Part shown: positions 4,170-14,282 of the stretch, piece after piece
How the letters are laid out: every line of letters begins with the position of its first letter
Position numbering within the stretch: the first letter of the stretch is position 1
The notes under the pieces: model-generated
What the model saw: only the letters and a program-made list of their open reading frames with translations
The model's database searches: none
What the model was told of the DNA's origin: nothing
Program-made: the position numbers and the translations under genes
Source: Mytilus trossulus
Taxonomy: Eukaryota
Direction of reading: 5' to 3'
DNA: 64,000 nucleotides
Assembly: GCF_036588685.1 (NCBI RefSeq)
Contig: NC_086386.1
Location: forward strand, 52,204,001-52,268,000

Positions 4170-5760
4170 TGTTACAGTAAATAGGTGAAATTAGGAATTA
4201 CATGTAATTACTAAAATTTAGGAATTACAGGTAATCCCCGATGCACTTAGTTAATACAAGTAATTCCTGAAACGGCCCAGTTATTACCAGTAATTACTAA
4301 TTTTAAAATGAATTTTTACACCTATTTACTGACTGCTAAAACAATGTTGTATTATGGTCAGGTGATCAAAAGTTATGGTAATACTAACTAAAAAATCAGT
4401 TAGTACAGTACAGTAAATTTTGAATGGTTGATTTCTATAAAAAAATATCTTGAATAAATGTGGACTTTCAAATATTTGGTTAAATCCGAGTAACTTTAGT
4501 TTTAATACAAAACGGTTCAAGTTGAGCATTAAACAGATAATTTTTGACAAATTTCAGCAGACATGGAAATCAGAAATTAAAAATTCTCCTAAAGTATAAT
4601 GTTTTAATTTTTTAAAGAAAACTTTGAATTTTAAGAATATTTAGATTTACTACGTTATACAGATAAGATTGTAAAAAAGGTTAAAAACTGGAACGAACTG
4701 TTATGTGCATTAGCTTCGAGATATAATTTTTTTTTTATATTTTTGTTGTTGTTAAATCATTAATAAAAATGATATAGTGAAATTATAATTCACTGTTAGC
4801 AGCCAATCTGGTTATATTTTGTTAAAATAGCTGAGAAACAAGGTTGATAAGTTGTGCACTTACGAGGGAATATTTGGACCTCATTGAATACGTATTCGTG
4901 TGACCTCCAATTCAACCTCTTGCTGGAGATGGGTTATCGCTGTATTTAAAAGCTATTAAAGTTGTAAGGGTTTTGCAGAACAGATAGCCTACTTTTGCTG
5001 TTAATCGCAGGCTCAACAAAAATGAGGGGAAAATATTAAAATTTTAATCTAGATACTATCTTTTGACTAGTACTGTAAGAAACTTCTGTCAAAATTGGGT
5101 AAAAATCCAGGATGGTTTATAAAACCTAATGTTTTAAAAACTTTAACTGCATAGTGTATGAAATGTTAACTGGAGAAAAAAACTCTAGTCTATTTATAAG
5201 TAATATACGAAAAAAAGGATTCGTTTTACAAACTTTACTTTTGGATATTAACTTATGATCATAAAAAATTGCTTCTGTCCATGTTTGGTATAAAACCAGG
5301 ATATTTGGAGAAAGTTATTTTAAAGTTTAAAACCTCATGATGGAGATTTTAGTTTAACCAAATTATTAAAATCAATTTTAGATAGATATCATTGTCCTGC
5401 ATGCATATATTTACAGAGTTTCAAATCCGATAAAACAACTATTTTCCAGTTTCAATTCACAAACATTAAAGAGTATGCACTTTTGATGTGCCTTATATTC
5501 CTACATCCTTAAGTAACTCCCTTAAAATCCCTATCTCTTTACTTTCTTATTTGGTATTTTGAATTATGGTTTTAATTTAAAAACAAAAACATCAAGTTAG
5601 TAAATAGCTGTAAAAATGACCAAAATAATCAGTGATTACCAGTAATCACTGAAACAACTAGTAAATACATGTAATTACTAAATTGGCTAGTAATTACAGG
5701 TATTTACTGAAACGTTTAGTAATTACATGTAATTCCTAATTTCATCTATTTACTGTAACA
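4170..5760. mobile_element. Non-autonomous TIR element (TGTTAC...GTAACA) with subterminal tandem repeats, inserted in (TA)n
   Basis: ~46-bp TIR TGTTACAGTAAATAG(G/A)TGAAATTAGGAATTACATGTAATTACTAAA with 1 mismatch, ~30-bp AATTACANGTAATT units at both ends, and no ORF. Confidence 0.85.
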
Positions 5761-5765
5761 TATAT

Positions 5766-5945
5766 ATATATAACAAGTCTAAAAGAATACAACATCACCA
5801 AAAACACAATAAAACGAACAATTGTGTTTTGGTGATGTTGTATTCTTTCAGACTTGTTATATATTATATTATGTAGTGTACTGCATCATGTTTATATGAT
5901 CCATCGCCCCGTAAGATTTATCGTTGACTATTTATTCAGTCATTT
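5766..5945 (+). mobile_element. Miniature fold-back PLE 3'-end insertion
   Basis: Arms 5766-5810 / 5821-5864 (1 mismatch, 1 indel) with a 10-nt spacer. The tail 5865-5945 is roughly 90% similar to the reverse complement of 6718-6798. Confidence 0.85.
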
Positions 5946-5953
5946 AATATATA

Positions 5954-6696
5954 TCTATAATACTAAAATTACGAGGTCCAATTTGTCAGCCGTCATCACG
6001 TAAAAACGACGAATCAAAGAATTCAACTTTATATATAACTTATATAGTACAAAGGTGTAGATTAAAAATTACACCACTCCAGGCTCTTTTGTTTTCCACA
6101 TAATTAATATTGCCAACAATTAAGAAGTTCCGGGTCGAGTCCGATACCGATACCAATAGTATATTCATCTGTTACCTATTACCTTATCTGTACGTTCCGC
6201 ATTTGACCAGGCGCACCACCAAACGGTGTATTCAGGATGTGCTATATACACGGGTCATACTCACAGGGTTGACACTACTAATTTGTCAAAATGTAACTTA
6301 TTGTAGTATTCTAATCAGTAAGACTTTATAAGATAACAATACGAATACTAAAAATAAGGCGTATAGGTACAGTTTTCAATTTGTTAGCGGGCATGACGTA
6401 AAACAGCGAATCAAATAATTCAACTTTATTTATAACTAATATAGGACAATGCTGTTGATTAAAAAACACTCCATCCCAGGACCTTTTGTTTTCCAAATAA
6501 TTAATATTACCAATAATTGATAAGTTCCAGTTAGGCGGGTTCAAACAGAAAGATTTGAAAGCAGAGAAAACTGTGATAACTATCTTATAATCGGCATGAC
6601 TTTATCAGATGACAATACTAATACAAAAATAAGTCTTGCGCATAGTTATATACTTTAATTCAGTCACGGACCCGCGATATCACGGGTGTGTTCTAG
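5954..6696 (+). mobile_element. Non-autonomous Helitron
   Basis: A|TC 5' end (TCTATAATACTAAAA), CTAG|T 3' end, GC-rich hairpin ACCCGCGATATCACGGGT at 6670-6687, no TSD, and an internal ~150-bp diverged direct repeat. Confidence 0.85.
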
Positions 6697-6857
6697 TATA
6701 TATATATATATATATATAAAATGACTGAATAAATAGTCAACGATCAATCTTACAAGGCGATGGATCATGTAATATGATTCTGTACACTACAAAATATAAT
6801 ATATAACAAGTCAAAAAGGGTACAACATCACCATAAAATAACTATAAAATATACAAA

Positions 6858-6898
6858 TATTAGATATTTCGGATAACAGATATCCTTCTTCAATAATA
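6858..6898 (-). ncRNA. Minimal type-I hammerhead ribozyme variant (mirror copy)
   Basis: Exact reverse complement of 12689-12729. Confidence 0.6.
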
Positions 6899-7441
6899 GC
6901 ACGATGTCAAATGAATCATGTCAATTCAAATTGAGACTCTATCAAAATCTTGATTTATACAATTTAAGCGAACGCTGGAACAATTTTAAAATTTCCAAAC
7001 ACACCGCAAAGACTACAGAAATATGCCAAAAATAAAAATAGTTATTTACGATGTGAAATGGCACAACTTTAGATTTCCAAAGGATGTGACAGTTGAGATG
7101 TAATAACTGCATTGAGGGCAGTCCTCAAACAAAAAAATCAAAATAATCAAAAGTGTCCTTACCGATCCAGGATGGTATAAATTAGACAACGGCAGGGCAA
7201 TTACAACGGAAACTACATATTAAAGCCTTCCAAACGAATAGCAGTCTAATAGTGATTGAAAAAATAAGTTTTGTATATTGAGCTTAAATAATTGAACGTG
7301 GCAACGTACTTATACATCATCCCGAATCAATGAAAACCTGTAATTTAAACGGTAATTTTAAAAATAATTTCGAACTGTAAAGCCAGTACTAAATCCGGCG
7401 TTGTTTAAAACAGGTGGTCACAGAAAAATGAGGGACTCGTT

Positions 7442-9679
7442 CTATGTTTTTTCATTTATGCCCTCTGGGGAGACTGTCCGTAACTTTCTTATCCAAAATC
7501 TTTCCCGAGCGACTCTGTCGACCTTCGACCAACACTCGTTGTGGTCTATGATCGTGATGGTAAGGTTTTTGAGATCAGCTTGTGTGTGTCCAGGTGATCT
7601 CAAATGACGACTTACGGGTAGGTCGGGCTTGCAAGTGTAGTCACTTCGATGACCATTCATGCGTTTGTTAAATGGCTGCTCTGTCTCGCCAACATACTGC
7701 ATGCCACATCGACACTGAAGGAGGTATACAACATTCTGGGTTTTGCAAGTTACATTGCAATATATAGTGTACACAGACCCAGTCGAGTGGCAAGTGAATG
7801 TTTGAGTATTCAGTATTTGTTGACAAGTCAGGCAACGTCTGTTACCACATGACTTGCACCATCCTGCAGTTGAACAGCTTTTATTTGAGGAAACGTCAGC
7901 TCTAACAAATAAGTCTTTCAGACTTGCTGGTCTCCGAAAAGCTAAGACAGGAGGATTAGGAAAGATCTTGGATAATTTAGGGTGTTTGGCAATAGTTTGC
8001 CAATTGGCACGGATCAAACGTGAAAGGTTATTAAAGGCTGGATTGTATGTAAGAACAAACGGGACTATTTTGCTGCGCCTCTTCTGTTTGTACTGTAAGA
8101 GGTCATTGCGGCTGTTATTGTTAGCGCGCGCAAACCCCTTATCTATGTCCAATTTCTTATAACCTCGTTTTGTCAAAAATCCGCGAAGTTCCTGTAACCG
8201 TTTCGTGACAGCCTCCTCAGAGGAGCAAATCCGCTTGACTCTGAGAGCTTGACTGTACGGGATACTTTTTGTACAGTGTTTTGGGTGACAGCTTTGGGGA
8301 GAAAGGTATTGATGTTTATCTGTGGGTTTACAGTAGAGGTCTGTTGATATGACACCGTCCTTTATAGATGTGGTTGTGTCTAAGAAAGATATCTTAGAGT
8401 CGGAAATTTCATACGTAAATTTAATTGAATGGTGGGCGTTGTTTGCATGTCTGATGAAATCATCCAGTTTTTGTTGAGATTCAATCCATTTCATGTCAAC
8501 ATCATCAATGAAACGGAACCAAGACAAAGGTTTGGATAAAGATGTTGCAATAATTTGTTTTTCTAATTTGCCCATGAAAATATTGGCGTAAGACGGTGCC
8601 ATTTTCGTCCCCATCGCTGTCCCGTTAATTTGAAGGTAATGCTCACCATTAAAGGTGAAATTGTTGCATTTCAGGACCAGAGTAAGCAGCTGGACTAAAC
8701 ATTCAGTAGGTGGTTCTAAAATGTTGCGCGAGTCCCATATTTCCCTACAAGATTGTATGCCGTCATCATGAGGTATGTTGGTATACAATGAGGTGACATC
8801 TAAAGTGACAAGGAGGGTTTCCGGAGGAAGAGGGTTCATGGATTCCATTTTACGAAGATAATCTGTAGTGTCTTGAATGTGGGAAGGAAGATTTTCTACA
8901 TGAGATCTTAAATGAAAATCGACGAATTCCGAGATTTTCTCAGTCGGATGGCCGTTTGCGGATACAATGGGTCTACCAGGGTTGTTAACCTTGTGTATTT
9001 TGGGAAGAAGATACAATCGACCAGGCTTGGCATTCTCTGGCTTTAAATAACCAATTGTATCCTCATCTATGTGACCGTCATTGTACATGGTTTGTAACGC
9101 AGTGATAATTTTGGAGCTAAACTCGGAAGTAGGGTCATAGTCTAGCTTCTTATAAAATCTCTCATCAGAGAGCTGACGCACTGCTTCCGCGATGTAGTTA
9201 GCTTTGTCCATTATCACAACGGCACTGCCCTTGTCTGCTGGTTTTATCACAATATCATCTCGGTTTCTCAGCGATTGTATGGCTTTTTTCTCGTCAGGAG
9301 AAGTGTTGTAAAATGACGAGTACTTGTTGCTAGCTAGATGAACAACATCCGATTTGATTTTGTCGATAACATCTTCCAGTGTAGCAGATTTACTAGGTTT
9401 TGGAATCCATGAACTCTTCTTTTTAAAATGCGGAATTATGATTTCTTCCTCCGAGTCAGACGTGGCTGTGTCCTCCTCATTATCCACCTCTTTATCCTTG
9501 TTACCAAAATATTCTTTGATTCTGAGGGTTCTAGCAAAGTTATCAAGGTCATCTCCCAATTTCATATCATCTATGTTATTGGGAGTAGGGCAAAAATTCA
9601 AACCCTTGGACAAGACTTTAGTTTCGTCCTCAGATAAAGAGACGGAGGATAAATTGACAACCGTGTTGTTGGGATCCAT
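7442..9679 (-). CDS. PLE reverse transcriptase-GIY-YIG endonuclease polyprotein (left arm, probably 5'-truncated)
   Basis: Mirror of 9908-12145 with identical translation. The ORF stays open to 9823 (TTG) and the first ATG is at 9679. Confidence 0.93.
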   Translation of the reverse strand: MDPNNTVVNLSSVSLSEDETKVLSKGLNFCPTPNNIDDMKLGDDLDNFARTLRIKEYFGNKDKEVDNEEDTATSDSEEEIIIPHFKKKSSWIPKPSKSATLEDVIDKIKSDVVHLASNKYSSFYNTSPDEKKAIQSLRNRDDIVIKPADKGSAVVIMDKANYIAEAVRQLSDERFYKKLDYDPTSEFSSKIITALQTMYNDGHIDEDTIGYLKPENAKPGRLYLLPKIHKVNNPGRPIVSANGHPTEKISEFVDFHLRSHVENLPSHIQDTTDYLRKMESMNPLPPETLLVTLDVTSLYTNIPHDDGIQSCREIWDSRNILEPPTECLVQLLTLVLKCNNFTFNGEHYLQINGTAMGTKMAPSYANIFMGKLEKQIIATSLSKPLSWFRFIDDVDMKWIESQQKLDDFIRHANNAHHSIKFTYEISDSKISFLDTTTSIKDGVISTDLYCKPTDKHQYLSPQSCHPKHCTKSIPYSQALRVKRICSSEEAVTKRLQELRGFLTKRGYKKLDIDKGFARANNNSRNDLLQYKQKRRSKIVPFVLTYNPAFNNLSRLIRANWQTIAKHPKLSKIFPNPPVLAFRRPASLKDLFVRADVSSNKSCSTAGWCKSCGNRRCLTCQQILNTQTFTCHSTGSVYTIYCNVTCKTQNVVYLLQCRCGMQYVGETEQPFNKRMNGHRSDYTCKPDLPVSRHLRSPGHTQADLKNLTITIIDHNECWSKVDRVARERFWIRKLRTVSPEGINEKT

Positions 9680-9907
9680 CGGAACTCGAATTTTTCTTTT
9701 AAATCTACGATTTCGAGGTTTTTTCTTAGATTTCGTAGAGGGTCTAATTGAAGGGGTGTTAATTTGCACACCATCACGTTTAAATTTGTACAGATCAACA
9801 AATTTAAACGTGATGGTGTGCAAATTAACACCCCTTCAATTAGACCCTCTACGAAATCTAAGAAAAAACCTCGAAATCGTAGATTTAAAAGAAAAATTCG
9901 AGTTCCG

Positions 9908-12145
9908 ATGGATCCCAACAACACGGTTGTCAATTTATCCTCCGTCTCTTTATCTGAGGACGAAACTAAAGTCTTGTCCAAGGGTTTGAATTTTTGCCCT
10001 ACTCCCAATAACATAGATGATATGAAATTGGGAGATGACCTTGATAACTTTGCTAGAACCCTCAGAATCAAAGAATATTTTGGTAACAAGGATAAAGAGG
10101 TGGATAATGAGGAGGACACAGCCACGTCTGACTCGGAGGAAGAAATCATAATTCCGCATTTTAAAAAGAAGAGTTCATGGATTCCAAAACCTAGTAAATC
10201 TGCTACACTGGAAGATGTTATCGACAAAATCAAATCGGATGTTGTTCATCTAGCTAGCAACAAGTACTCGTCATTTTACAACACTTCTCCTGACGAGAAA
10301 AAAGCCATACAATCGCTGAGAAACCGAGATGATATTGTGATAAAACCAGCAGACAAGGGCAGTGCCGTTGTGATAATGGACAAAGCTAACTACATCGCGG
10401 AAGCAGTGCGTCAGCTCTCTGATGAGAGATTTTATAAGAAGCTAGACTATGACCCTACTTCCGAGTTTAGCTCCAAAATTATCACTGCGTTACAAACCAT
10501 GTACAATGACGGTCACATAGATGAGGATACAATTGGTTATTTAAAGCCAGAGAATGCCAAGCCTGGTCGATTGTATCTTCTTCCCAAAATACACAAGGTT
10601 AACAACCCTGGTAGACCCATTGTATCCGCAAACGGCCATCCGACTGAGAAAATCTCGGAATTCGTCGATTTTCATTTAAGATCTCATGTAGAAAATCTTC
10701 CTTCCCACATTCAAGACACTACAGATTATCTTCGTAAAATGGAATCCATGAACCCTCTTCCTCCGGAAACCCTCCTTGTCACTTTAGATGTCACCTCATT
10801 GTATACCAACATACCTCATGATGACGGCATACAATCTTGTAGGGAAATATGGGACTCGCGCAACATTTTAGAACCACCTACTGAATGTTTAGTCCAGCTG
10901 CTTACTCTGGTCCTGAAATGCAACAATTTCACCTTTAATGGTGAGCATTACCTTCAAATTAACGGGACAGCGATGGGGACGAAAATGGCACCGTCTTACG
11001 CCAATATTTTCATGGGCAAATTAGAAAAACAAATTATTGCAACATCTTTATCCAAACCTTTGTCTTGGTTCCGTTTCATTGATGATGTTGACATGAAATG
11101 GATTGAATCTCAACAAAAACTGGATGATTTCATCAGACATGCAAACAACGCCCACCATTCAATTAAATTTACGTATGAAATTTCCGACTCTAAGATATCT
11201 TTCTTAGACACAACCACATCTATAAAGGACGGTGTCATATCAACAGACCTCTACTGTAAACCCACAGATAAACATCAATACCTTTCTCCCCAAAGCTGTC
11301 ACCCAAAACACTGTACAAAAAGTATCCCGTACAGTCAAGCTCTCAGAGTCAAGCGGATTTGCTCCTCTGAGGAGGCTGTCACGAAACGGTTACAGGAACT
11401 TCGCGGATTTTTGACAAAACGAGGTTATAAGAAATTGGACATAGATAAGGGGTTTGCGCGCGCTAACAATAACAGCCGCAATGACCTCTTACAGTACAAA
11501 CAGAAGAGGCGCAGCAAAATAGTCCCGTTTGTTCTTACATACAATCCAGCCTTTAATAACCTTTCACGTTTGATCCGTGCCAATTGGCAAACTATTGCCA
11601 AACACCCTAAATTATCCAAGATCTTTCCTAATCCTCCTGTCTTAGCTTTTCGGAGACCAGCAAGTCTGAAAGACTTATTTGTTAGAGCTGACGTTTCCTC
11701 AAATAAAAGCTGTTCAACTGCAGGATGGTGCAAGTCATGTGGTAACAGACGTTGCCTGACTTGTCAACAAATACTGAATACTCAAACATTCACTTGCCAC
11801 TCGACTGGGTCTGTGTACACTATATATTGCAATGTAACTTGCAAAACCCAGAATGTTGTATACCTCCTTCAGTGTCGATGTGGCATGCAGTATGTTGGCG
11901 AGACAGAGCAGCCATTTAACAAACGCATGAATGGTCATCGAAGTGACTACACTTGCAAGCCCGACCTACCCGTAAGTCGTCATTTGAGATCACCTGGACA
12001 CACACAAGCTGATCTCAAAAACCTTACCATCACGATCATAGACCACAACGAGTGTTGGTCGAAGGTCGACAGAGTCGCTCGGGAAAGATTTTGGATAAGA
12101 AAGTTACGGACAGTCTCCCCAGAGGGCATAAATGAAAAAACATAG
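9908..12145 (+). CDS. PLE reverse transcriptase-GIY-YIG endonuclease polyprotein (right arm, probably 5'-truncated)
   Basis: Motifs: LSKGLNFCPTP, IKPADKG, RPIVS, LDVTSLYTNIP, GTAMGTKMAPSYA, WFRFIDD, thumb HPKHCTKSIPYSQALR, Cys linker CKSCGNRRCLTC, GIY-YIG NVVYLLQCRCGMQYVGET...RERFWI...GIN. The track start at 9764 is a TTG from the opposite arm. First ATG is 9908 (745 aa). Confidence 0.95.
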   Translation: MDPNNTVVNLSSVSLSEDETKVLSKGLNFCPTPNNIDDMKLGDDLDNFARTLRIKEYFGNKDKEVDNEEDTATSDSEEEIIIPHFKKKSSWIPKPSKSATLEDVIDKIKSDVVHLASNKYSSFYNTSPDEKKAIQSLRNRDDIVIKPADKGSAVVIMDKANYIAEAVRQLSDERFYKKLDYDPTSEFSSKIITALQTMYNDGHIDEDTIGYLKPENAKPGRLYLLPKIHKVNNPGRPIVSANGHPTEKISEFVDFHLRSHVENLPSHIQDTTDYLRKMESMNPLPPETLLVTLDVTSLYTNIPHDDGIQSCREIWDSRNILEPPTECLVQLLTLVLKCNNFTFNGEHYLQINGTAMGTKMAPSYANIFMGKLEKQIIATSLSKPLSWFRFIDDVDMKWIESQQKLDDFIRHANNAHHSIKFTYEISDSKISFLDTTTSIKDGVISTDLYCKPTDKHQYLSPQSCHPKHCTKSIPYSQALRVKRICSSEEAVTKRLQELRGFLTKRGYKKLDIDKGFARANNNSRNDLLQYKQKRRSKIVPFVLTYNPAFNNLSRLIRANWQTIAKHPKLSKIFPNPPVLAFRRPASLKDLFVRADVSSNKSCSTAGWCKSCGNRRCLTCQQILNTQTFTCHSTGSVYTIYCNVTCKTQNVVYLLQCRCGMQYVGETEQPFNKRMNGHRSDYTCKPDLPVSRHLRSPGHTQADLKNLTITIIDHNECWSKVDRVARERFWIRKLRTVSPEGINEKT

Positions 12146-12688
12146 AACGAGTCCCTCATTTTTCTGTGACCACCTGTTTTAAACAACGCCGGATTTAGTA
12201 CTGGCTTTACAGTTCGAAATTATTTTTAAAATTACCGTTTAAATTACAGGTTTTCATTGATTCGGGATGATGTATAAGTACGTTGCCACGTTCAATTATT
12301 TAAGCTCAATATACAAAACTTATTTTTTCAATCACTATTAGACTGCTATTCGTTTGGAAGGCTTTAATATGTAGTTTCCGTTGTAATTGCCCTGCCGTTG
12401 TCTAATTTATACCATCCTGGATCGGTAAGGACACTTTTGATTATTTTGATTTTTTTGTTTGAGGACTGCCCTCAATGCAGTTATTACATCTCAACTGTCA
12501 CATCCTTTGGAAATCTAAAGTTGTGCCATTTCACATCGTAAATAACTATTTTTATTTTTGGCATATTTCTGTAGTCTTTGCGGTGTGTTTGGAAATTTTA
12601 AAATTGTTCCAGCGTTCGCTTAAATTGTATAAATCAAGATTTTGATAGAGTCTCAATTTGAATTGACATGATTCATTTGACATCGTGC

Positions 12689-12729
12689 TATTATTGAAGA
12701 AGGATATCTGTTATCCGAAATATCTAATA
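12689..12729 (+). ncRNA. Minimal type-I hammerhead ribozyme variant in the PLE 3' UTR
   Basis: TATTA-TTGAAGA-A-GGATA(tctgt)TATCC-GAAA-TA-TC-TAATA: stem I TATTA/TAATA, stem II GGATA/TATCC, core UUGAAGA (C3U) and GAAA, palindromic AUAU helix III, predicted cut after AUC at 12724. Confidence 0.6.
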
Positions 12730-12808
12730 TTTGTATATTTTATAGTTATTTTATGGTGATGTTGTACCCTTTTTGACTTGTTATATATATATATATATAT
12801 ATATATAT

Positions 12809-14282
12809 TACTAATAAATCCAACATTTCCGGTATGAATAGTTTTAATTCACAGTACTTTCATGTTTAAATAACAATCTTCAGGTGAAACTATACATGAT
12901 TAACGTAACTATTTAACGGTAGGTATGTAACGTCATAGTTGTCGTTGAGTATATAAAGGGAGATAAATCGTATTACACTAAGTCTATATATAGAAGTATG
13001 GAGCGTCATTATTACACAATAGAAAATGCATAGTTTGCATTCAATCGTGATTTAAATTTTAAAATAAAATGTGTTTTCTTGACTTCTCGTGTAATGTCAC
13101 AACCAATATTCATTTTATAAAATGGGAATATTTAAAAAAATCCCCCTCCACATTCGTCTAAATGTTTGCTTAGGGGGATTTTTCTGTATTGTGGCTGCCT
13201 TATATGTTGTCTATGCATGCGCACTCTTTCTGTTACACTGTTCCCTGTTTTGTGGTTGCCGTTTACTTTGTAGAAGTGTTTCTGTATTTATTAAACGGCG
13301 CATATTTTAATCCTGACCTAGAATAGGTAAATTTGCCTTTGCAACGGGAATAATTTTAAAGTTCCGGGGATTATGTGTAATAACGAACGGTATTTTATCG
13401 TTGTTATTACTCTGCTCCTCGCAGGTGGAGCGTAGTTGGTTGGTTGGGATCTGTTTTGCCATTTGAATTCCTCTTTCTATTAAAGGCTCTGGATAGTTTT
13501 GCTTGATCAAAAATAATTGTAGTTCCTCTAGACGGTCTTCTCTCAAATGTTCATCCTCGACTACTGTACATATTTTTCTTGCTAAACAATAGGGGATATT
13601 CCTATTGGTATGAGATGGGTGGCACGAATTAAAATCTAAATACTGATGAGCATGATGAGTATCAGTACCTTTGTAAAAAATATCTGTTTCAATTTCAGTG
13701 CCATCTTTAATAACAAGAATGTCTAGAAACGGTAATTGGTTGAAATTTTCATCCTTCGTAAACTTTATGGAGGTATGAAGGTTATTTAGTATGTCCGAAA
13801 ATAGTTCTTCGTCGGATTTGTTCCAGATAATGAAGCAATCATCAAGGTATCTTTTCCATGATAATTCAAATTCTCTTGCAAATTAAACTCCAAAATTATT
13901 TTCAACTTCTTGATACAGTCTTTGTTCAAGGAAGCCCATGACTAATGTTGCATAGGTTGGTGCAAATTTTGTTCCCATTGCTGTCCCCCGATGTTGCAAA
14001 TAGTTCTTGCCATTGAAATAGCAAGAAGTGTTTTCAAGAATTAGTTTAGTAGAATCGAGTATAAAGTCAACACTGAATCGATTTGGTATTGCATCTCGAT
14101 GTTTTGCAACCCAATATTGTATTGCCTCTATTCCTAAATTGTGTGGAATTTTCGTATATAGGCTTGTGACATCGAAGCTTACTAAACGAGCGTGAACCGG
14201 TGCTATTTTTGGCAGGTGTGAGAGAAAATCTATATCGTCTCTTATATAGCTCGGTACATATTTACATAATGGTTTCAAAATT
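12809..14282 (-). pseudogene. Second, decayed 5'-truncated PLE (RT + GIY-YIG remnant) of a different family
   Basis: FDVTSLYTKIP, GTAMGTKFAPTYA, KIPFVITHNP and a C-terminal PLSKHLDECG...FILKFKSRLN, with stops, frameshifts and a deletion. TA-rich sequence on both flanks. Confidence 0.85.

Follow-up and report, generated by a model that had tools for sequence, protein, structure and literature searches.

A 6-kb palindrome in the Mytilus trossulus genome is a head-to-head dimer of a Penelope-like element and suggests coupled priming on both target strands

Here, we show that a 6-kb palindrome in the genome of Mytilus trossulus consists of two 5'-truncated copies of a 3532-bp Penelope-like element (PLE) joined head to head, the product of one retrotransposition into a (TA)n microsatellite. 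Our preferred reading, to which we assign a rough probability of 0.55, is that this dimer of a young, Neptune/Nematis-like PLE arose by coupled priming from both target strands on one RNA. It represents the known inverted-copy architecture of PLEs at full coding length, an unusually large and clean example rather than a new system, and further copies in the genome offer hints on the way these dimers arise. An earlier note on this DNA had presented the locus as a candidate fold-back retrotransposition system; this was an overstatement, since inverted copies, a one-sided tail, and a bias to (TA)n are typical of PLEs and already described (Craig et al. 2021, PMC8557442; Arkhipova et al. 2013, PMC3846280). 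Positions refer to the window, the stretch of 64,000 nucleotides that was analyzed as a whole, or, where prefixed with U, to the unit of the element.

RESULTS

Structure of the palindrome

The two arms occupy 6799 to 9789 on the minus strand and 9798 to 12788 on the plus strand, and each corresponds to U542-3532. An inverted-repeat search found them to be 2991 nt each, 100% complementary, and 8 nt apart, and blastn counted 0 mismatches in 2991, in line with the earlier note, which had found none in spot checks. Remnants of the (TA)n target microsatellite could be read directly at 6697 to 6718 on the left and at 12789 to 12808 on the right. On both sides, symmetry stops within (TA)n at the element end ...GTTATATAT, where the right arm terminates without a tail, and the outer flanks differ. 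The left arm alone extends a further 80-85 nt (6714/6719-6798, minus strand) up to its (TA)n, the last 5 nt being ambiguous with the microsatellite. This tail (6714 to 6798) is U1-85, the opening 80-85 nt of a following tandem unit: tandem copies continue past U3532 with this sequence, at 98.8% identity over U1-85 (L004:4492-4576), and the left arm itself is 99.8% identical to the unit from L004. The end of symmetry at the element boundary, the non-mirrored flanks, and the restriction of the tail to the left arm, all noticed before, were thus borne out. The flanks had also been taken to be unique; both turned out to be other abundant repeats. At least four different repeats adjoin TA runs within 5760-13250. 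The locus is situated 52 Mb into a chromosome-scale contig.

The 8-nt "spacer" ACAGATCA (9790 to 9797, plus strand) is U534-541, which continues the right, tailless arm in the 5' direction and does not form a loop of the tailed arm. By blastn, this arm comprises 9790-12788, i.e., U534-3532 including the spacer, and the full unit at the axis point reads ...AAACAGATCA followed by ACAAATTT.... The query match ends at q2993 for the right arm and at q3073 for the left arm. In the left arm, the 3' UTR (6799-7441, minus strand) is followed by an RT-linker-GIY-YIG frame (7442-9789, minus strand) that is open up to the axis; the right-arm frame runs to a stop at 12145 and continues into its 3' UTR (12146-12788, plus strand). 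The open frames at the axis, 7442-9823 (-) and 9764-12145 (+), have 793 codons, and the 3' UTR measures 643 nt, matching the earlier estimate of ~640 bp. Both arms lack U1-533/541, that is, the 5' end and ~129 codons, and neither is a complete element. The uninterrupted coding frame previously ascribed to each arm is therefore real as far as the axis but N-terminally truncated compared with the family open reading frame of 911 aa, which starts at U154, the arms beginning at U534/U542.

The element family

Pfam assigned RVT_1 to the locus protein (E = 1.3e-9), and its translation contains "KPADKGSAVV" with the PLE-type DKG motif, a criterion for PLE reverse transcriptases (PMC8557442). Among 2287 homologues at E <= 0.001, the top ones were Mytilus proteins with RVT_1. 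A putative GIY-YIG core, "VVYLLQCRCGMQYVGET" followed by R/H residues, is readable in the translation, with two Cys between GIY and YIG, as the CCHH motif of PLE endonucleases would have. Full-length homologues of 45-61% identity carry precomputed PF01541, and the local Pfam scan gave no GIY-YIG match for the locus protein even at E <= 5. Upstream of this core lies a Cys linker, "CKSCGNRRCLTC", which is of CX2-5CxxC type; such a Zn-finger-like linker is present in Neptune/Nematis and absent from Penelope/Poseidon (PMC8557442). The organization is likewise of PLE type: copies occur in tandem with a period of 3532 bp, with partial units upstream, and as head-to-head pairs, and they show the U1-85 tail and (TA)n at their flanks. 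The element thus appears to be an endonuclease-containing PLE of Neptune/Nematis-like type, the clade label being drawn only from domain order and linker motif; the RVT_1 match and the readable motifs support the earlier call of a PLE with RT, Cys linker, and GIY-YIG. The family is abundant in the Mytilus genome, its copies are 98-100% identical, and it is young, consistent with the recent insertion proposed before.

Rfam searches gave no hammerhead or twister ribozyme match at E <= 1 in either the arms or the full unit, nor any across the whole window at gathering score; they returned only spurious miRNA matches on the hairpins. Minimal PLE hammerheads may escape the models. A loose search for CUGANGA...GAAA produced nothing convincing. 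Hammerheads are typical of PLEs and not universal, Naiads being without them. RNA folding around both start sites was no better than in shuffles (z = -0.8), and a search of solved structures by sequence yielded nothing relevant.

A miniature pair in the same window

A second head-to-head insertion, at 5760 to 5950 and TA-rich on both sides, belongs to an older (87%) subfamily and aligned with that of L030. Its tailless arm (5766-5814, minus strand) is U3482-3532, and its tailed arm (5827-5864, plus strand) is U3495-3532, followed by the tail at 5865-5950. Here again, the surplus inner nucleotides are on the tailless arm. This miniature copy is an insertion independent of the 6-kb dimer.

Copies and pairs in the genome

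Per search, the census scored the 40 best among some 1300-1900 candidates from a first look, and it is biased to long copies; the pairs C1, C7, C22, C8:153, and others were scored from blast coordinates only. Head-to-head pairs made up about half of the long copies that could be scored, so the possibility raised in the earlier note that other copies are never inverted, which would have spoken against its proposal, does not apply. Every family insertion examined is bounded by (TA)n. Simple insertions have two end points, with the tail (n = 10) or at U3532 (n = 5), and the same 85-nt tail closes the simple insertions L003, L012, L016, L022-24, and L029. Both outer ends could be seen in 17 head-to-head pairs from two subfamilies, and in all 17, exactly one arm is tailed. 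Under independent choice of end points, this is expected with a probability of 0.44 per pair, giving ~1e-6 for 17/17 (the explicit calculation was made in 13- and 14-pair versions). Pairs lacking any tail were absent (0/17), though about one-third of singles are tailless.

About 20 pairs include 6 near-symmetric ones. Inner ends lie <= 17 nt apart in 5/15 scored pairs (binomial p = 5e-7), and the sixth near-symmetric pair, C8:15322680-15327237, has zero offset. Where the offset is not zero, 4/5 near-symmetric pairs have a surplus of 5-17 nt, carried by the tailless arm or by the one facing the tailed arm; this polarity, 4 to 1 plus one zero, is not significant alone. The miniature copy (5766-5950), L010, and L017 share the spacer polarity of the locus, the surplus nucleotides of L010 lying on the arm opposite the tailed one, the outer end of which is not visible. 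The exception is C1:93612170-93616108, in which the tailed arm is longer by 2-4 nt with a 2-nt microhomology. In at least seven pairs, the tailless arm is longer by 180-1300 nt; among asymmetric pairs, the tailed arm exceeds its partner about half of the time. A short query consisting of the 3' end and tail, directed at short-armed pairs, recovered only one new pair.

In older pairs, arm divergence amounts to 0.1-3%, and almost all differences between arms are private to one arm (L013, 11/11; L025, 26/28; L027, 19/20), which implies that the arms were identical at birth and that such structures persist in the genome. At the locus, the arms are identical to each other, yet at least 3 substitutions separate them from every other sampled copy, as expected for the single retrotransposition event into (TA)n already proposed. 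Copying of a palindromic master was ruled out, as the axis position is unique to each pair. The youngest pairs are mostly near-symmetric. An asymmetry that simply grows with age is doubtful: L021 and L007, at 0.1-0.2% divergence, are already strongly asymmetric, and the miniature copy and L010 are old yet near-symmetric.

DISCUSSION

In the mechanism that we favor, the GIY-YIG endonuclease would nick both strands of (TA)n, and both 3' ends would prime reverse transcription on one RNA of several units, at two neighboring start sites rich in A/U. A start at U3526-3532 would give rise to the tailless arm, and initiation at U80-85 of the following unit, 80-85 nt farther downstream, to the tailed arm; because both primers share one RNA, each start site would be used once. 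The downstream (tailed) cDNA would trail and displace the upstream cDNA, and at the truncation stop its 3' end, a few nucleotides short (8 at this locus), would switch to the displaced leading cDNA. Each cDNA might then be copied to complete the opposite strand, leaving a near-perfect palindrome with one tail and dispensing with separate second-strand priming. Nicking and priming are modeled on published in vitro data for another PLE and on our census; the later steps, from displacement to completion, we infer. Counting against coupled priming, the tailed arm is longer in about half of the asymmetric pairs, so that the leading or trailing order does not fix final arm lengths. The model thus requires extra assumptions, namely, an early stop, a switch at 2-9 nt of microhomology, or later deletions.

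The in vitro reaction was described for PAc, the Poseidon element of Anolis carolinensis (Frangieh et al. 2024, PMC11167929). The purified PLE protein, predicted to form a dimer, cleaves and extends both target strands (PMC11167929), and PAc reverse transcription starts at two adjacent internal RNA sites, the interval between which is the "tail" (PMC11167929). The authors reported that top and bottom strands did not differ in their start sites, a point against coupled priming, but addressed neither head-to-head products nor strand-specific start sites (PMC11167929). PAc and the mussel element share two alternative cDNA starts spaced by the tail, an AT-rich target, and a template longer than one unit. 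The start sites of PAc are without target homology, whereas both candidate sites of the mussel element are rich in A/U, and pairing with (TA)n would be possible.

Self-priming is a classical property of reverse transcriptases. It was already proposed for PLEs in 2013 (Arkhipova et al. 2013, PMC3846280), and the earlier note presented a version of it in which a cDNA begun at the tail end snaps back and copies itself up to the internal TATATAT, which anneals to the other (TA)n end. The perfect symmetry and identity of the arms, the existence of a near-symmetric class, and the pairs C8:15322680-15327237 and C1, with zero offset and a tailed arm longer by 2-4 nt, respectively, are as a hairpin would give, and stopping at the (TA) microhomology would likewise leave exactly one tail. 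That the arms should be symmetric about one axis and identical at birth is, however, expected under coupled priming as well. Fold-back predicts that the secondary arm adds nothing, whereas the tail is present only in the left arm and U534-541 only in the right arm. With the spacer contiguous with the tailless arm and the tail on the other, neither arm is a plain copy of the other. A hairpin loop must belong to the primary, tailed arm, but the surplus inner nucleotides join the tailless or opposite arm, in sense orientation, at the locus and in three near-symmetric pairs, and in at least seven pairs the tailless arm is longer by 180-1300 nt. A perfect fold-back palindrome with a later small central deletion on one arm would mimic this spacer polarity, and rescuing the fold-back indeed requires either such a one-sided deletion or a spacer inversion. 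Moreover, tailless cDNAs should fold back into tail-less pairs, the absence of which among 17 has a probability of (2/3)^17, ~0.001, and fold-back offers no reason why copying never passes a 7-nt TA stretch into the tail. We therefore consider self-priming unlikely as the origin of the dimer.

It is considerably less probable still that the palindrome is absent from the animal and stems from a mis-join or from a long read that was chimeric or folded back. Long perfect palindromes are a classic artifact of long-read libraries and hard to assemble, assembly problems with these elements have been noted (PMC8557442), and both flanks here are repeats. A fold-back read would, however, mirror the flanks, whereas the mirror stops at the two natural ends of the element, in (TA)n, with differing flanks, 52 Mb inside a chromosome-scale contig. 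The locus also follows the same one-tail rule as 16 other pairs, and older pairs with private arm mutations (0.1-3%) show that this type of structure is real in the genome. Hardly credible is an origin from two independent, opposite insertions in the same (TA)n, or from a later inverted duplication or gene conversion of one insertion at the DNA level. (TA)n runs are re-used as landing sites, as the several repeats abutting TA runs in 5760-13250 illustrate, but the chance that two independent 5' truncations in 3 kb fall no more than 8 nt apart is ~0.5%, and such coincidence recurs in six pairs. Independent insertions would not be expected to obey the one-tail rule, nor to show 0 differences in 2991 nt when the nearest other copy differs at 3 sites; an inverted duplication of DNA would copy flank and would not stop at element boundaries.

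Canonical endonuclease-containing PLEs (Penelope/Poseidon, Neptune, Nematis, and Naiad) form pseudo-LTRs, with an adjacent inverted 5'-truncated copy and a one-sided tail of 30-40 bp (PMC8557442; PMC3846280). The mussel element shares with them the RT and a predicted C-terminal GIY-YIG domain with two Cys within the putative core, as well as tandem or partial-tandem and head-to-head copies, the tail at one end, and insertion into (TA)n; the CX2-5CxxC-type linker is shared with Neptune/Nematis. It differs in that the inverted part spans 3 kb, a full arm that equals its partner rather than a short pseudo-LTR; in that the arms do not enclose a complete unit; in that the tail has 80-85 nt instead of 30-40; and in that Rfam found no hammerhead ribozyme in the unit.

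Twin priming in L1 produces LINE-1 insertions with inversion and 5' truncation. By analogy, both target strands would prime in one event in either system, with the cDNAs joined by microhomology. In L1, however, the second primer anneals internally, which places an inverted 5' segment beside a direct 3' segment without duplication, whereas the mussel dimer has the element 3' end in both arms and a duplicate of the entire body. Another parallel is offered by first-strand cDNA that self-primes by snapping back and by the fold-back chimeras of strand-displacing polymerases: the polymerase jumps to a DNA strand of opposite polarity, and the resulting inverted repeat has little or no spacer. The acceptor in the favored model would be the second displaced cDNA and not the same strand, because each arm holds sequence that the other lacks.

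The origin of the tandem and inverted structures of PLEs and of their one-sided tail has been described as still undefined (PMC8557442), and the only biochemical study stops short of it (PMC11167929). The mussel family is young and abundant and has many head-to-head pairs with cleanly readable ends. These are natural products for which the models differ in what they predict for the number of tails per pair, the sign of the axis offset, and the existence of tail-less pairs. As the locus shows, an animal chromosome can harbor a perfect 3-kb palindrome, and related pairs last long enough for their arms to diverge by up to ~3%. As a tentative generalization, to which we give slightly less than an even chance, PLE dimers might be products of a concerted reaction rather than accidents of self-priming, with one, probably dimeric, ribonucleoprotein priming from both nicked strands at two neighboring sites of one RNA, after which the trailing cDNA would switch to the displaced leading one and the two would complete each other. 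If true, such a concerted reaction would explain the one-sided tail, the inverted copies, and second-strand synthesis of PLEs at once.

Structure and age of the palindrome

The 6-kb perfect palindrome described in the earlier note, with its (TA)n ends, unmirrored flanks and tail on the left only, was seen again by repeat search and blastn. Located 52 Mb into contig C14 of the host genome, it consists of two arms of 2991 nt each (6799-9789 and 9798-12788), 100% complementary and 8 nt apart, which blastn aligns with 0 mismatches and no gaps. In each arm, an open frame of 793 codons runs to the axis and across it (left arm, minus strand, 7442-9823; right arm, plus strand, 9764-12145), and a 643-nt untranslated stretch lies on its 3' side. 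The outer ends of both arms (...GTTATATAT) merge into (TA)n runs, read in the sequence at 6697-6718 and 12789-12808, and a tail of 80-85 nt (6714/6719-6798) lies between the end of the left arm and the left run; the outer flanks differ from each other. Since no difference separates the arms over 2991 sites and the nearest other family copy differs at 3, the comparison indicates a single, very recent event, in agreement with the recent one-step insertion first proposed. A one-step, recent inverted duplication mediated by a Penelope-like element (PLE) holds as the reading of this locus, but its framing as a new system is unjustified, because it is the textbook inverted arrangement of PLEs, here at its largest.

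Identity of the element and its family

Assignment to PLEs with a reverse transcriptase, a cysteine linker and a probable GIY-YIG endonuclease stood up. An RVT_1 domain was found in the arm frame by Pfam, and the translation contains a DKG motif, a CX2CX4CxxC linker and a GIY...YIG core with two internal cysteines. The local Pfam scan of the arm protein reported no GIY-YIG domain, which is annotated in full-length homologues at 45-61% identity. The motif, linker and core are features that define PLEs with a C-terminal endonuclease and a linker of the Neptune/Nematis type, which are associated with (TA)n targeting (Craig et al., PMC8557442). The closest proteins, at 96% and 91%, come from Mytilus edulis and M. 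trossulus, respectively, and the host is a Mytilus mussel. Rfam searches of the arms, the full unit and the whole window revealed neither a hammerhead nor a twister ribozyme.

The host genome (1.3 Gb, 541 contigs) contains many family copies at 98-100% identity and a second subfamily at 87%. Tandem copies have a period of 3532 bp, and the natural tandem at locus L004 served as the reference unit (U1-541 = L004:4492-5032; U542-3532 = L004:1501-4491). The full family open reading frame, of 911 amino acids, starts at U154. The unit's first 533-541 nt, and with them about 129 codons, are missing from each palindrome arm; thus, neither arm is a complete element.

The tail corresponds to U1-85, the start of the following tandem unit (98.8% identity). 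Ordinary insertions are built as [partial upstream unit][U1-3532][U1-85] or [Ux-3532][U1-85], and among the single insertions scored, 10 were tailed versus 5 ending at U3532, i.e., about a third are tailless. The family thus has two alternative 3' ends, separated by 80-85 nt and both in A/U-rich sequence. The 8-nt spacer ACAGATCA is U534-541 in the orientation of the right arm; hence, the tailless right arm comprises U534-3532 and the tailed left arm U542-3532 plus U1-85.

Conservation between the subfamilies is much higher over the final 40 nt of the unit plus the tail (alignment of U3493-3532 + U1-100; ~91% mean column identity, with long invariant runs) than over whole units (87%), which suggests a constrained cis element around both start sites. 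RNA folding around the two start sites gave no significant prediction (z = -0.8). At L028:1405-3841 (G000:C9:19915669-19918112), the 17 terminal nt of the unit and the 85-nt tail stand ahead of a tailless, 5'-truncated copy (U1190-3532) in direct orientation. The tail is thus on the 5' side, as if synthesis, on reaching U1190, had moved over to the second start site.

Surroundings and landing sites

The palindrome sits among nested elements, all adjoining TA runs. A miniature head-to-head copy of the 87% subfamily (5760-5950) has the same plan in mirror image, and a complete 737-bp repeat with TA-rich bounds (5960-6696) lies between the two PLE insertions. This repeat has two internal direct repeats of 129 nt (6003-6131 and 6400-6528, 84%). 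A genome search gave about 3000 first-look candidates for it, and all 40 that were scored are full-length at 95-97% identity. Two further repeats lie to the right (12810-13250 and 13247-13600; 105 first-look candidates), the first beginning at the base directly after the (TA)n run. This first repeat occurs elsewhere in inverted pairs with its (TA)n-side end outward, e.g., at C3:85905926-85906325 and C7:71175014-71175488, and may be a non-autonomous element mobilised by a PLE.

Many family insertions (L003, L015, L016, L018, L022, L023 and L028) lie in the (TA)n end of one SINE-like repeat with a tRNA-type box (GGTTCGAATCCCGG), and this microsatellite end appears to be the commonest landing site of the family. 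L018 and L019 (G000:C2:14612193-14614797 and 14669250-14671854) are tailless, share their truncation point and identity values and lie 57 kb apart; they are probably a segmental duplication carrying one insertion.

Head-to-head pairs in the host genome

The earlier note had held that its reading would fail if other family copies were never inverted; this is clearly not so, as roughly half of the long copies scored sit in head-to-head pairs. In the census sample, drawn from the best 40 candidates per search and biased to long copies, exactly one arm was tailed in 17/17 pairs with both outer ends visible. These are, in the main family, the window pair, C22:230371, C1:93612170, C7:6668141, C8:13903537, C8:52217144, C15:2114145, C8:38242206, C13:11027343, C5:77271101, C7:47173383, C8:52453 and C6:53120151, and in the 87% subfamily the miniature copy, C8:15322680, C5:36340514 and C5:60704802. 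With 2/3 of single insertions tailed and independent choice (0.44 per pair), the chance of this outcome is about 1e-6. The same rule is apparent in head-to-head tandem arrays on contig C40, which "look the same". At G000:C40:1096011-1111594, two arrays of full 3.5-kb units face each other; the minus side holds 2.5 units or more and the plus side 2 or more, one outer end being tailless and the other tailed (or continuing).

In 5/15 pairs scored, the inner ends lie <=17 nt apart (p = 5e-7 for independent truncation points, about 1% per pair). A sixth near-symmetric pair, C8:15322680-15327237 of the 87% subfamily, is a second perfect palindrome, with both arms starting from the same unit position, no spacer, each arm 100% identical to the query and a tail on the plus arm only. 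Expressed as tailless-arm minus tailed-arm length at the axis, the offset is +8 in the window pair, +13 in the miniature copy, +17 at L017, 0 in the C8:153 palindrome and -2 to -4 in the C1 pair; at L010, the arm opposite the tailed one is longer by 5 nt, its outer end being out of view. At L017:4158-4193 (G000:C8:52219805-52219840), 31 nt of the plus arm (U890-920) form a near-symmetric axis, immediately after which that arm has a 950-nt gap and resumes at U1871; either synthesis jumped between templates or sequence beside the palindrome centre was deleted later. In the remaining pairs, one arm or the other is the longer by 180-2800 nt, and the joints often show microhomology of 2-9 nt.

Origin of the inverted pairs

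A fold-back read or mis-join at the window locus is very unlikely: it should produce mirrored flanks, whereas the mirror stops at two natural alternative element ends in (TA)n between different flanks, and the locus fits the one-tail rule common to 16 other pairs. Moreover, the arms of older pairs differ by 0.1-3%, and compared with about 40 other copies nearly all differences are private to one arm (11/11 at L013, 26/28 at L025, 19/20 at L027 and 4/5 at L020). The arms of each pair were therefore identical at birth and have mutated in the genome since. An artefact is thereby excluded as the general explanation, as are two insertions from different source copies, and independent insertions or DNA-level events as a whole are scarcely credible.

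A propensity for self-priming has been inferred from palindromes at inverted junctions in PLEs (Arkhipova et al., PMC3846280). The route originally proposed, in which a tailed cDNA folds back and is copied to an internal TATATAT, is not favoured and seems unlikely to us. It predicts a loop contiguous with the tailed arm and nothing extra in the tailless arm; the window pair, where the spacer sits with the tailless arm, the miniature copy and L017 show the opposite, as does L010 as far as visible. A tailless cDNA folding back cannot supply a tail, and, with a third of single insertions tailless, fold-back should also yield pairs without any tail, of which 0/17 were found ((2/3)^17, about 0.001). 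A perfect fold-back product would mimic the offset sign described above if one of its arms later lost a few nucleotides near the centre.

Inverted 5'-truncated copies, a tail at one end and a microsatellite bias are typical of PLEs, by a mechanism "still undefined" (PMC8557442). With a purified PLE protein, for which a dimer is predicted, both target strands were cleaved and extended, and reverse transcription began at two adjacent internal RNA sites whose interval corresponds to the tail (Frangieh et al., PMC11167929). We favour, with a probability of roughly 0.55, a coupled route with two primers. The polarity of the pairs that contradict fold-back, together with the lack of no-tail pairs, would require two RNA-templated initiations, one per start site. 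With the two primers on different RNAs, pairs with two tails or with none should also arise, and neither was seen in 17; if both primers were on one RNA, they could not share a site, making one tail per pair obligatory. For the steps after priming, we infer that the upstream-started, tailless cDNA would lead, while the tailed cDNA, begun 80-85 nt downstream, would trail and displace it. When synthesis halts, the trailing end would stop short of the leading end by a few nucleotides and could switch onto the displaced leading cDNA, so that each cDNA templates the second strand of the other. It is tempting to speculate that the 5-17-nt offset is the footprint of the leading enzyme.

This coupled route accounts for the near-symmetric class, the usual offset sign and the identity of the arms, and needs no separate second-strand primer. 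Its weak points are an offset sign of 4 to 1 plus one zero, not significant alone, the extra events needed for asymmetric pairs (early stops, microhomology-mediated switches or later central deletions) and the report of no start-site difference between strands in vitro (PMC11167929). The locus is a clean specimen in a young family, in which simple rules of the pairs discriminate between models of PLE transposition.
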